64,000 nucleotides of DNA from Tubulanus polymorphus (lineage: Eukaryota; Animalia; Nemertea): the NCBI RefSeq assembly GCF_964204645.1, contig NW_027437457.1, forward strand, positions 34,127 through 98,126, written 5' to 3'. Made by a program: the position numbers and the translations under genes. Of this stretch, positions 11,268 through 45,400 are shown in pieces; within the stretch, counting starts at the first letter, position 1; each line of letters begins with the position of its first letter. The notes under the pieces are model-generated. The model worked only from the letters and a program-made list of their open reading frames with translations, was not told where the DNA came from and ran no database searches.

Positions 11268-14200
11268 ATGGAACTTGACACGAATGATTGGTATTCAAAG
11301 GTGTTTATTTCTCTTTAAATCAATTATGACACTTGCATAGAATCGATATTCGTTAAATAGAAATGTTTTATAAACTAATGTGTGATATTGTAGTCAGTAA
11401 TCAAGTGTTTGGAGGCATCTAACATGACCTAAACCATCGCCTTATTTCTCTCGACTCACTTGCCAGTGTTGGTTTCTGTTGTAGGATGCAAGTGATAATC
11501 CAGCTGTGATTAATATGGATGGATTTGATAATAATGAAGGTTAGTAAATGGTTCCCTCTGCCACCATTTGGTGGCTAAATCCTGATTACTAATTATTTGA
11601 TTAATTTAATCTTGACAAATGTTAAATTTCTTAATAATAAGGTGTTAATTCGGGTGCAACAACAATGATGCATCACCAACGGCAACTGGGTACAGCTTCG
11701 GATGACGGCAATAATGAGGAAAATAAACTGAATTTATCGGAAGGTTTAAAACAGAATGTCACATCATTTGTAAGTTTTCTTCTGGATGAGGGCCTCCGAA
11801 TGAGATCCTCCTAATGAGGGCCTCCAGATGAGGGCCTCCGAATGAGGGCCTCCGGATGAGGGCCTCCTAATGAGGGCCTCCTAATGAGGGCCTCCAGATG
11901 AGGGCCTCCGAATGAGGGCCTCCGGATGAGGGCCACGGAGCTCGTGAGGTTTTACTAGTTTCACAAATAGACCGTCCGATGTGGAGGTCTAATGAATGAT
12001 GCATATTGGTTGTTTGTAGATGTGGCAGGCAGGAAAAGCTCAAGCTCAACAACTCACGTCCTACGCTAAAATCGATATTCTACGACCTTATTTCAACGTT
12101 GAACCGCATCAAGTTGGACAAAGACTGTTGTATTCTTTGGTGCCAAAGTTTCCTGGCACAGCTCCACAGGTAGGAATCAGAAAGAGGGAGAGAGAGGAGG
12201 ATGAGAGAAAGGATGAGTGAAATGATGAGTGAGAGGGTTGTATTTAATGCTCTTACTGTATTTCAGAAATTACCCAGTGAATTATATGGTCCAACGATGT
12301 TAGTTTTTACACTGGTGGCGCTACTGTTGTTTCAAATGAAAATGTCCGGTCATCATGTTGTAAGTAAAACGGCCATTTTGGATTGATGTTTTACTATCTT
12401 GCAAAAAGGGTTTAGATATAGGGTTATGTCAAAAATTGGTTATGTTGATATTTTGCGGGGTGAAGGCGCTCTAATGGGTTCAGCTATAGGATTATGTTGA
12501 TATTTTGCAGGGTGAAGGCGCTCTAATGGGTTCAGCTATAGGATTATGTTGATATTTTGCAGGGTGAAGGCACTCTAATGGGTTCAGCTATAGGATTATG
12601 TTGATATTTTGCAGGGTGAAGGCACTCTAATGTGTTCAGCTATAGGATTATGTTGATATTTTGCAGGGTGAAGGCACTCTAATGGGTTCAGCTATAGGAT
12701 TATGTTGATATTTTGCAGGGTGAAGGCGCTCTAATGTGTTCAGCTATAGGATTATGTTGATATTTTGCAGGGTGAAGGCACTCTAATGGGTTCAGCTATA
12801 GGATTATGTTGATATTTTGCAGGGTGAAGGCACTCTAATGGGTTCAGCTATAGGATTATGTTGATATTTTGCAGGGTGAAGGCGCTCTAATGGGTTCAGC
12901 TATAGGATTATGTTGATATTTTGCAGGGTGAAGGCGCTCTAATGTGTTCAGCTATAGGATTATGTTGATATTTTGCAGGGTGAAGGCGCTCTAATGGGTT
13001 CAGCTATAGGATTATGTTGATATTTTGCAGGGTGAAGGCGCTCTAATGGGTTCAGCTATAGGATTATGTTGATATTTTGCAGGGTGAAGGCGCTCTAATG
13101 TGTTCAGCTATAGGATTATGTTGATATTTGGCAGGGTGAAGGCGCTCTAATGTGTTCAGCTATAGGATTATGTTGATATTTTGCAGGGTGAAGGCGCTCT
13201 AATGTGTTCAGCTATAGGATTATGTTGATATTTTGCAGGGTGAAGGCGCTCTAATGGGTTCAGCTATAGGATTATGTTGATATTTTGTAGGGTGAAGGCA
13301 CTCGAATGTGTTCAGCTATAGGATTATGTTGATATTTTGCAGGGTGAAGGCACTCTGATGGGTTCAGCTATAGGATTATGTTGATATTTTGCAGGGTGAA
13401 GGCGCTCTAATGGGTTCAGCTATAGGATTATGTTGATATTTTGCAGGGTGAAGGCGCTCTAATGGGTTCAGCTATAGGATTATGTTGATATTTTGCAGGG
13501 TGAAGGCGCTCTAATGGGTTCAGCTATAGGATTATGTTGATATTTTGCAGGGTGAAGGCACTCTAATGGGTTCAGCTATAGGATTATGTTGATATTTTGC
13601 AGGGTGAAGGCGCTCTAATGGGTTCAGCTATAGGATTATGTTGATATTTTGCAGGGTGAAGGCGCTCTAATGGGTTCAGCTATAGGATTATGTTGATATT
13701 TTGCAGGGTGAAGGCGCTCTAATGGGTTCAGCTATAGGATTATGTTGATATTTTGCAGGGTGAAGGCACTCTAATGGGTTCAGCTATAGGATTATGTTTC
13801 GCGTATTGGATCGGAGGTTCTGCCCTTATTTGGAGTGTGGCTTACGTATCAAACTCACACATCAGAGGAATGCAAGTTGCGTCATTACTGGTACGTTTAT
13901 AACGGGCTTCCGTATTACTCTTTACGAGCTACCGTACTCACGTTGAGGGTATGCACTAATGAGCTGCTGTAATATTTGTTTTTGTAGGGGTATGCACTAA
14001 CAGGCCACTGTATTGTATTGTTTCTCGGGACAGTAATTCACACCTCTCACACTCACATGCTGTTCTATTTATTATGGGCGATATTTGGAGGTCTATGCAC
14101 GCTGAAAATGGTTCGTATTTATAACTGATCTCGTCTCCGATCAATTCTATCTCATTGTTGATTCGTCTAATTAATCAATATTATTGATTATTTTCAGGTG

Positions 14201-42477: not shown

Positions 42478-45400
42478 CTATAAGTTATATTTTCCACGCG
42501 TAGGGAATGGATTGACAGCTTGACCCTGACAAAATTCATTAAATATCAATTTGAACAAGAACAAATGGAATATAATAATAAGGAAAGCGATAGCTCCCCA
42601 GAATAATGTCGGTAAACCTCCGTAACTGTGTCCATGACGATGTAACGCGATCACATGATGTTCATGAGCCGGAGCTGAAAATATATAAAAAACAACAATC
42701 AGAGACGCATTACTACGGTAACTCAATAATACAGAGTGAATCTCTTACCCTCGACAATCTCTCGAACATGAATCGCACGTTTCAATAACTCCATATGTTC
42801 TTTATCAGTAGTTATATACAATATAGCAGTGAGGGGACGAGTTAACTTAACCGGGAACTGAGTTCTCTGAGACCTGTCAATCAAACAGTAGTTATATACA
42901 GTATAGCAGTGAGGGGGTGTGGTTAACTTAACCGGGAACTGAGTTCTCTGAGACCTGTCAATCAAACAGTAGTTATATACAGTATATAGCAGTGAAGGGG
43001 GTGTGGTTAACTTAACCGGGAACTGAGTTCTCTGAGACCTGTCAATCAAACAGTAGTTATATACAGTATATAGCAGTGAAGGGGGTGTGGTTAACTTAAC
43101 CGGGAACTGAGTTCTCTGAGACCTGTCAATCAAACAGTAGTTATATACAGTATAGCAGTGAAGGGGGTGTGGTTTACGGGGTGTTGAAACTCACTTGAGA
43201 AGTACAGGAGTATCTAAACATCCAGCATCACACGCGTAATACGGTTTATCATTTCGATCCATCGCTACGTAAATCATCGCTTTATTATCTTCACCTACTT
43301 CAACTGTTATATTTACATGAGTATGGTTACCATAGTTTAATCTACGGAACTCATAATCCCGGTGTAACTCCCGTGGATGCATTCCAAATTCTAAATGATC
43401 CGGTTGAGCTTCTCTTCGAGAATTATCCGTACTGAATTTAAATGCTCCAAAACTGAGCAGCATTGCCTGCAAAATGCCATCAGCTCCTAAAATTATAAAA
43501 CACATTATTACTACACTATAGGGGGCGGAGATATATACAGCTAGGGGAGGGGCTATATACTGCTAGGGGGCGGGGCTATATACTGCTAGGGGGTGGAGCT
43601 GTATACAGCTAGGGGGAGGGGCTCGAGGGAGAATTGTTTTTACCTGTTTGTACCATATTTGTACATCCTTGTTTCTCTAATGTTATGATCCAAGTTTCTA
43701 CAAGTTTCATGATGTTATCTGCTGTATTTGTTCGCGACCACAGAGATGATGATTCCTGCCTGTAAATAAACTACTAATATGTATACAATGTGGGAGTAGG
43801 GGGTGAACTGTATATAGAGCAGGGGAGGCGGGGATTGCACCATATTTTAAGAGGGGGAGACAGTGAAGAGTCAGTCAGAAAGGAAACCGTGCATTTAAAT
43901 GTTCGAATACTGAATAGGTTCAACCTCAAATATACCATTTATCAGACTGTTCTTAGACAGGCTGAGACTGCTCTCAGACAGGAGACAGACTGAGACTGCT
44001 CCCAGACAGGAGACAGGCTGAGACTGCTCCCAGACAGGAGACAGGCTGAGACTGCTCTCAGACAGGAGACAGGCTGAGACTGCTCTCAGACAGGAGACAG
44101 GCTGAGACTGCTCTCAGACAGGAGACAGGCTGAGACTGCTCTCAGACAGGAGACAGGCTGAGACTGCTCCCAGACAGGAGACAGGCTGAGACTGCTCCCA
44201 GACAGGAGACAGGCTGAGACTGCTCTCAGACAGGAGACAGGCTGAGACTGCTCCCAGACAGGAGACAGGCTGAGGCTGCTCCCAGACAGGAGACAGGCTG
44301 AGGCTGCTCCCAGACAGGAGACAGGCTGAGGCTGCTCCCAGACAGGAGACAGGCTGAGGCTGCTCCCAGACAGGAGACAGGCTGAGGCTTCTCTCAGACA
44401 GGAGACAGACTGAGACTGCTCTCAGACAGGAGACAGGCTGAGACTGCTCTCAGACAGGAGACAGGCTGAGGCTGCTCCCAGACAGGAGACAGGCTGAGGC
44501 TGCTCCCAGACAGGAGACAGGCTGAGGCTGCTCCCAGACAGGAGACAGGCTGAGGCTGCTCCCAGACAGGAGACAGGCTGAGGCTTCTCTCAGACAGGAG
44601 ACAGGCTGAGACTGCTCTCAGACAGGAGACAGGCTGAGACTGCTCTCAGACAGGAGACAGGCTGAGACTGCTCTCAGACAGGAGACAGGCTGAGAAGTTA
44701 AGCTGAATCAATAATAGATAGTTAGTTATCTAACATTGGTTAAAGCAGAATAATAATATTAATAATAATAATAATATGTATATGTTGATTGTACATACAC
44801 TAATGTCTTAGATTCAACCAACCTGTCAAAAAATAATTGCAATTTCATTTTCACTTGAATTCTTAATTTAGAATAAAAATCTGTATATACGTAATGATTA
44901 GTGAGTATACTAACAGCGTGTGAGGTCCGGCGTAACATCGATCAGGAAAATATAACTGTTTTTCGATATTAAACTTTCTCGCTGTTGAAACTTGTTTTTC
45001 GTGTAAAGGATTCGTAGAATGACTCAATACGTAGTAAATAGTGCTGTTAATTCTGTCACCGTTCAGAGCTCCAGGTGCTTTAGATAAACTGATCGATAAT
45101 CCAGAACTCCATAACTGTAATAAATAATATACAAACATACAGAGACATCTATTATAAAACCATTATGTTCTAAACGAGAATTTGAATCTGTATCAAACCT
45201 GATTCCAAACTGTTGTATGCTCTTTTTGAAGAGCTGTCGGTTCTAATGCTAATGCTTCTTTCAAATCCTGCAAATAGAATAGTCGGTACATGTCGTATCC
45301 ACTAGAGGGCGGTGTGTGTAATCAAATCTATCCACTAGAGGGCGGTGTGTGTAATCCCTCCACTAGAGGGCTGTGGGTATAATCTATCCACTAGAGGGCG

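Follow-up and report, generated by a model that had tools for sequence, protein, structure and literature searches.

Minisatellites whose repeat unit spans an exon/intron boundary, known as mirages, reportedly go back to the original Adh3 paper of Canestro et al. 2002. In amphioxus, they have been described in Adh3, troponin C, the globin genes BflGb6/9, and PGBD5, where the mRNA is normal, copy number varies between haplotypes, and a role in intron gain has been proposed (PMC3087553, PMC3902484). A case on the donor side is the human F7 gene, in which the first element of the 37-bp variable number tandem repeat (VNTR) of intron 7 (IVS7) spans the exon 7/intron 7 boundary, the identical pseudo-donors are silent, and the most upstream donor is chosen (PMC1557585). 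More generally, tandem duplication is a documented route to new introns, as in Rogers' AGGT model (PMC3265369, PMC4974935). Here, we explored a 64,000-nt stretch of DNA of the nemertean Tubulanus polymorphus (C40:34127-98126, hereafter the window; C40 is a small unplaced contig), in which six tandem arrays located within 31 kb repeat splice sites of five adjacent genes, namely, YIPF3, RPS11, CWF19L1, a nuclear receptor (E78 of an earlier note on this DNA), and KIAA2013 (Table 1). We propose that these arrays are, most probably, mirage minisatellites, that is, the outcome of ordinary repeat birth and expansion in minisatellite-saturated DNA with very short introns. No report of boundary-spanning arrays in nemerteans was found in the literature. 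The arrays belong to a known kind, here densely packed and in a phylum in which it is apparently unreported. The earlier note, which was made from the sequence alone, had called tandem duplication across splice sites rarely observed; however, the class carries a name in amphioxus and has been studied in human F7.

The five junction-spanning arrays of the earlier note were all recovered with Tandem Repeats Finder (TRF) and by reading the repeat units against the junctions. The sixth array, not included there, repeats a 5′ splice site, contrary to the claim that the duplicated site is always the 3′ one. With periods of 52, 54, 104, 49, 84, and 35 bp, 3.9–26 copies, and 92–98% identity, the six are head-to-tail repeats of minisatellite size. 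Five of them include the boundary together with a piece of the host exon, amounting, when the units are read against RNA joints, Pfam matches, and homologues, to 33 nt in YIPF3, 27 nt in RPS11, 28 nt in CWF19L1, ~19 nt in the nuclear receptor, and 72 nt in KIAA2013. The exon part in KIAA2013 is slightly longer than the 68 nt given previously. Gene identities come from an exon-by-exon Pfam search, in which four names are supported by Ribosomal_S17, CwfJ_C_1 (on the exon neighbouring the CWF19L1 array), zf-C4 (on the exon upstream of the nuclear-receptor array), and DUF2152; the YIPF3 name is taken from the earlier note and the exon structure, Pfam searches of single exons having yielded only a weak YIF1 match (E 0.097).

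The parallels with the amphioxus mirages are close. In both cases, the unit crosses from exon to intron or vice versa, with cases on the 5′ side as well as on the 3′ side, units measure from tens of bp to ~160 bp, many decoys retain AG or GT, the mRNA is spliced normally, and copies at the edge of the array are more divergent than the inner ones (here, the last unit of KIAA2013 and the first unit of YIPF3). The differences concern the phylum and the scale: copy numbers reach 26 here, compared to 3–6 in the amphioxus globins, and six arrays are packed into 31 kb, across five adjacent genes, in a region of which 32% is tandem repeat. For amphioxus Adh3, length polymorphism and somatic instability have been demonstrated.

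Table 1. Tandem arrays and associated exons in the window (positions count from the first nucleotide of the window)
Feature	Position	Strand	Basis and remarks
YIPF3-like, 52-bp x26.1 array	12440-13798	+	TRF; 97% identity
YIPF3, authentic exon	13759-13889	+	RNA joints; begins in the last array copy
YIPF3, sixth junction array, 35-bp x5	14322-14499	+	TRF; absent from the earlier note
YIPF3, alternative downstream exons	14952-15031, 15119-15243, 15538-15628		RNA contigs
RPS11, 21-bp x8.7 array	16896-17074	+	TRF; wholly within the last intron, 23 nt after the donor
RPS11, 54-bp x16.7 array	17084-17985	+	TRF
RPS11, authentic terminal coding exon	17955-18081	+	RNA joint; Pfam Ribosomal_S17, profile positions 44-68
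CWF19L1, 104-bp x12 array	21383-22630	-	TRF
CWF19L1, intron filled by 40-bp x18 array	24741-25460	-	TRF; intronic only
Nuclear receptor, degenerate 49-bp x3.9 array	27819-28007	+	TRF
KIAA2013 (DUF2152), 84-bp x4.5 array	42806-43174	-	TRF
KIAA2013, intron filled by 28-bp x61 array	45296-46997	-	TRF; 17 nt left at the donor, 28 nt at the acceptor
KIAA2013, intron nearly filled by 54-bp x67 array	48937-52549	-	TRF; 8 nt left at the donor, 12 nt at the acceptor; junctions not included

RNA and read evidence spans positions 12150-18100, to which four runs were aligned, and hence covers YIPF3 and RPS11. Two of the runs, X2 and X5, which come from two different studies, were treated as RNA on account of their GT..AG joints and of the depth over RPS11 exons (12,000-30,000 in X2, 47-228 in X5). 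The YIPF3 unit, as read from the sequence, joins 19 nt from the 3′ end of the intron to the opening 33 nt of the exon that follows; the array contains 25 intact acceptor motifs, i.e., 24 decoys and the real one, with AG changed to GG in the first copy, and its periodicity extends 7 nt (TTATGTT) into unique exon sequence. Contigs from both RNA runs join 12359 to 13759 with GT..AG, skipping 1399 nt, so that the last acceptor copy is used. The RPS11 unit combines 27 nt of the 3′ end of the intron with 27 nt of the terminal coding exon, and 15 of the 16 acceptors in this array are decoys; an X5 contig joins 16870(+2) to 17953(+2), again with GT..AG and again at the last copy, skipping 1082 nt (depth 277). 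At the 35-bp array, the unit of which represents the first 35 nt of the YIPF3 intron, including the 5′ splice site but no exon bases, the joints of both runs depart from 14319(+2), the first and authentic donor. This donor reads GTCAGT and is followed by the decoys GTTAGT, GTAAGT, GTTAGT, and GTTAGT, all of the GTNAGT type, of which GTAAGT is nearer the donor consensus than the authentic site. In the RNA contigs of the two genes, the arrays simply lengthen an old intron, with no sign that they supply a new intron or exon, and the mRNA is normal despite the duplicated splice signals at both YIPF3 arrays and at RPS11. No joint to any decoy is listed in the X2 and X5 contigs over 12150-18100, the contigs being of a kind that drops rare isoforms.

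The use of the first donor at the 35-bp array is the same behavior as that of the human F7 VNTR. However, F7 is a 5′ case that was studied with minigenes, whereas most of the arrays described here repeat the 3′ site, have the last copy chosen, and are known from sequence and RNA contigs. The earlier claim that the functional exon is always the last copy is borne out by the RNA joints in YIPF3 and RPS11 and, in KIAA2013, by homologues that place the exon in the last unit (see below). Likewise, the claim that the spliceosome must ignore the decoys agrees with spliced RNA that bypasses 24 of them in YIPF3 and 15 in RPS11.

Small unplaced contigs such as the one that carries the window are often rich in repeats, and one could ask whether long-read assembly has inflated single-copy junctions into arrays. 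This explanation is largely refuted and of negligible probability. A third run, X8, consists of raw Illumina DNA reads from another sample, at a depth of about 7x. Its mean depth is 6.1 in the YIPF3 array (six bins) and 5.5 in the RPS11 array (four bins), compared to ~7.0 in 13 unique bins, giving array/flank ratios of ~0.87 and ~0.78, respectively; for short reads at ~7x, ratios of 0.78-0.87 fit a copy number similar to or somewhat lower than that of the assembly. Furthermore, X2 RNA contigs contain unspliced array sequence, and the spliced RNA skips exactly 1399 and 1082 nt. The YIPF3 and RPS11 arrays thus exist, at ~0.8-0.9 of their assembled length, in an independent animal and are not artefacts of assembly.

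The three remaining arrays differ in how much of the gene they repeat and in how well the copies are preserved. The CWF19L1 unit comprises an entire 76-nt intron (GTGAGT...TGTAG) and extends 28 nt into the exon that follows. The array holds 12 acceptors and 12 GTGAGT donors and thereby forms 11 pseudo-exons of 28 nt, all of them perfect, with the real exon starting at 21414; inclusion of all the pseudo-exons would shift the reading frame. The nuclear-receptor unit derives from the acceptor and ~19 nt of the adjoining exon, the start of which is at 28009, but none of the decoys has an AG: the first copy reads ACCG, and the later copies carry a 6-nt deletion. This array is an older, decayed set of copies. 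In KIAA2013, the unit consists of 12 nt of intron and 72 nt of exon, and the last unit, which is also the most divergent, contains the start of the real exon (42873). This start follows from the alignment of homologues (P0005, P0014, P0024; tblastn) to the last unit, which alone encodes a conserved segment of 17 residues.

Could the decoys have a function, as poison acceptors that tune expression via nonsense-mediated decay (NMD), as recursive or stepwise splice points of enlarged introns, or as protein-binding platforms? The use of a YIPF3 decoy would lead to a stop after 13 codons (local translation), four of the five arrays described in the earlier note have retained intact decoy splice sites, as has the sixth, 5′ array with its donor-like decoys, and a CTCF-like motif occurs in a neighbouring 28-bp array. 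Nevertheless, we consider this possibility very improbable. The units are 96–98% identical along their full length, not just in the splice signals, so that youth or homogenization explains the intactness; the nuclear-receptor array, which is older, has lost its decoy AGs, and only direct joints are present in the assembled RNA of YIPF3 and RPS11. Recursive splicing, in particular, was rejected on sequence grounds because the decoy AG is not followed by a regenerated donor in the YIPF3, RPS11, or CWF19L1 sequences: in YIPF3, the GT within GGTGAAG is displaced by one base and would leave an extra G; GGATGT of RPS11 contains no GT; and GTTGTA of CWF19L1 is a poor match. Without such a ratchet point, recursion would not restore the frame. 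Of the two reasons that the earlier note had offered for the silence of the decoys, stepwise splicing accordingly finds no sequence support, whereas strict exon definition is plausible.

The same note had viewed the arrays as a recurrent amplification of splice junctions, and had set the result of an enrichment test in advance: junction-spanning units no more frequent than expected by chance were to speak against a special process. We ran a test of this kind on the 20 arrays of the window that could be assigned to introns of the five genes, after placing the flanking exons and checking the host introns for GT...AG. The ancestral length of each intron was taken as that of the host intron with the array collapsed to one unit (median 97 nt; most introns 57-132 nt). 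Under the null model, a unit of length L may land with equal chance at any position that overlaps an intron of length I, all such placements are counted, and the chance of including a junction is 2(L-1)/(I-L+1+2(L-1)), or 1 if L exceeds I. Among all 20 arrays, 8.9 are expected to span a junction, compared to 5 observed, or 6 with the donor-edge array. For the 6 arrays with units >40 bp, expectation (4.97) and observation (5) coincide, whereas among the 14 arrays with units <=40 bp, 3.93 are expected and 0-1 observed (probability of at most 1 = 0.05). Indeed, 13 of these 14 end 9-63 nt short of the donor and at least 20 nt short of the acceptor, the exception being the 35-bp donor array. Thus, no enrichment of tandem arrays at junctions was found among the 20 intronic arrays under uniform placement, which is the result that the earlier note had named as counting against a special process, and no process that amplifies junctions needs to be invoked; large units span junctions because they are too long for these introns, and smaller units tend to avoid splice junctions. 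Four of the six junction arrays include the 3′ junction only, one a whole intron, and one the 5′ site only, and exon sequence makes up between 27% and 86% of a unit (0% in the 5′ array), so that breakpoints do not keep a constant distance from the junction.

These results make it unlikely that breaks, R-loops, or reverse-transcribed splicing intermediates seed the arrays at junctions, which would then be true hot spots. Such targeting would agree with the CWF19L1 unit, which begins at intron base 1, like a lariat intermediate, and with the 35-bp array, which begins at intron position +1. It is at odds, however, with a count of junction-spanning arrays that is below that expected from random placement, with the small-unit arrays that stop short of both splice sites, and with the variable position of the junction within the unit. 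Moreover, the microhomology at unit ends indicates slippage at the DNA level, and the CWF19L1 boundary itself is explained by a 5-nt match, GGTGA, between donor and exon sequence.

The microhomologies noted previously are present at the unit ends: TTATGTT (7 nt) in YIPF3, TGTT (4 nt) in RPS11, and GGTGA (5 nt) in CWF19L1, the chance of a 7-nt match being ~6e-5. Matches of 4-7 nt fit slippage between short direct repeats, whereas the order of the variant units, mosaic in YIPF3 and with a four-unit higher-order pattern in RPS11, is such as unequal exchange yields. We infer a history in which short direct repeats, non-contiguous and separated by 35-104 bp, would give rise to the first duplication through slipped mispairing or template switching, and copy number would then grow by slippage or unequal exchange. 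In introns of ~60-130 nt, units of ~50 bp or more would exceed the space between the donor and the branch point or acceptor, and would therefore take in the junction and a piece of exon. An array would survive where one full junction stays at the edge, joined to the rest of the exon, i.e., in the last copy for acceptors and in the first copy for donors. The spliceosome would pick this edge copy as the sole one that adjoins the remainder of the exon and the partner signals, and most transcripts spliced at a decoy would contain a premature stop and be degraded.

The silence of the decoys would accordingly be a matter of downstream exon context combined with NMD. Decoys are identical to the real acceptor up to +26 in CWF19L1, +27 in RPS11, and +33 in YIPF3, where some of them match it from far upstream; given that YIPF3 and RPS11 are nonetheless spliced correctly, the deciding information must lie further downstream in the exon. 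Candidate selectors are enhancers in the body of the YIPF3 exon together with the next donor at +131 and, in RPS11, the end of the gene. In YIPF3, NMD could hide decoy errors, considering the stop after 13 codons. By contrast, RPS11 decoys of the TAG type would, if used, add an in-frame insert of 18 aa per unit, and splice fidelity there must be intrinsic because the decoys are located in the last exon, many of them in frame, and NMD cannot clear them.

Several observations weigh against the interpretation of the arrays as ordinary mirage minisatellites with reliably ignored decoys. Each CWF19L1 decoy amounts to a flawless copy of the 76-nt intron with a 28-nt exon behind it, and an intron-defining spliceosome should splice every one of them, so that, on its sequence, this array looks like the hard case for any account of how decoys are ignored. 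The RPS11 decoys, being in a terminal exon and partly in frame, are beyond clean-up by NMD. The RNA evidence comes from Logan contigs, which lose rare isoforms, and low-level decoy use is compatible with the data. As for the null model, it rests on 20 arrays of one window, with intron lengths reconstructed by collapsing, and includes only arrays with placeable flanking exons. In two arrays, that of CWF19L1 and the 35-bp one, a unit boundary coincides precisely with a donor, where about one such case is expected by chance, and the skew towards 3′ junctions, albeit not significant, could be real. We nevertheless favor the mirage explanation: the arrays are there, those of YIPF3 and RPS11 recur in a second sample and are spliced correctly, microhomologies mark unit ends, and junctions are not enriched.

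If splice junctions are not the special feature, what is unusual is the region itself, which is saturated with minisatellites. TRF returned 84 rows for the window, which merge into 56 loci and cover 20,542 bp, or 32% of the sequence, with 14-46% in each 10-kb bin. In comparison, 17 random 10-kb samples from the interiors of twelve chromosome-size contigs contain 3.5% tandem repeat on average and 11.5% at most, a ~9-fold difference. Almost all placeable introns of YIPF3, RPS11, CWF19L1, and KIAA2013 host their own private minisatellite. In the 268-Mb assembly, neither the YIPF3 unit nor that of CWF19L1 has a match outside its own locus on C40, so there is no sign in these two of a dispersed repeat or a transposon-derived satellite. 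The repeat units are unrelated and locus-private and hence reflect a process rather than a repeat family, as the earlier note had held. Its claim of frequent local amplification is valid for the window, but attributing the process to the genome as a whole is perhaps too broad, given the much lower density in the chromosome samples.

Human minisatellites cluster in subtelomeric and recombination-associated regions. The present region resembles these in its strong excess of G-rich minisatellites and in the mosaic variant patterns, but differs in that no telomere array or recombination data tie C40 to a chromosome end. A telomere-pattern search found TTAGGG arrays at the ends of C1, C4, and C7, with nothing for C40 among the matches listed. 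Within the mirage explanation, the cause of the regional repeat richness is something that we infer rather than observe. Elements around CTAGGGTTAGGGTTACGAACCGGACTGG, with two telomere repeats each, occur at 10211-10409, 11037-11245, and 40758-40820, and TTAGGG is found 30 times on the + strand of the window compared to 5 times on the - strand. The telomere-like 101-bp element of the window is local, save for a single short match on the chromosome-size contig C6, 5 kb from its start, which is too weak to use.

Other repeats and genes of the window can be described briefly. Four tandem arrays with a 76-77-bp unit (18828-20856 and 60474-60796) contain a tRNA box-B-like motif, GGTTCGAACCCGGGACAC, and resemble a satellite derived from a short interspersed nuclear element; ARAGORN called no tRNA in these tRNA-like 76-bp arrays. 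A short, high-copy dispersed repeat lies at 14737-14935, where Illumina depth rises to ~45 from ~7 in the flanks and, on either side, many reads end loosely. Downstream of the YIPF3 exon that ends at 14321, alternative exons are joined: X5 continues to 15538, whereas X2 continues to 14952 and then to 15119 or 15538. An X5 contig over RPS11 has 23 unmatched letters before 16276; a first exon not yet placed, a leader, or chimerism of the contig could account for them. The 61-copy array of the KIAA2013 intron holds CCACTAGAGGGCG, which is similar to the CTCF core motif. Between the nuclear receptor and KIAA2013, an exon-size open reading frame (ORF) at 35490-35837 (+) shows a weak match to the Lamin Tail Domain (E 8.7e-5, below the Pfam cut-off) and may be part of a lamin/intermediate-filament gene. 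Finally, an ORF at 62115-62474 (-) resembles, by eye, a reverse-transcriptase fragment and is probably a decayed retroelement.

The results presented here imply that boundary-spanning minisatellites are not an oddity of amphioxus but are a predictable outcome of high minisatellite activity in very short introns. As in models of intron gain by tandem duplication, the extra splice signals come from pre-existing sequence, and the CWF19L1 units, complete intron-plus-exon modules, are raw material for such gain; unlike in those models, the arrays only lengthen an existing intron. For genome annotation, such arrays will mislead gene predictors, and decoys are not to be read as alternative exons. For splicing, the arrays represent natural constructs: as many as 24 acceptors share the same sequence, which begins far upstream and continues to about +27 to +33 nt. 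A bolder possibility, which we regard as tentative and rather doubtful, is that the nemertean genome holds mirage arrays at a scale unreported for any animal, in dozens of genes and with up to ~25 identical decoys per intron, perhaps with a reliable exon-proximal splice choice even in CWF19L1. If this is the case, the genome would provide a natural, massively parallel test of 3′ splice-site choice, as well as a live source of new exons and introns, and a regional cause of the minisatellite saturation would amount to a new mutational phenomenon.

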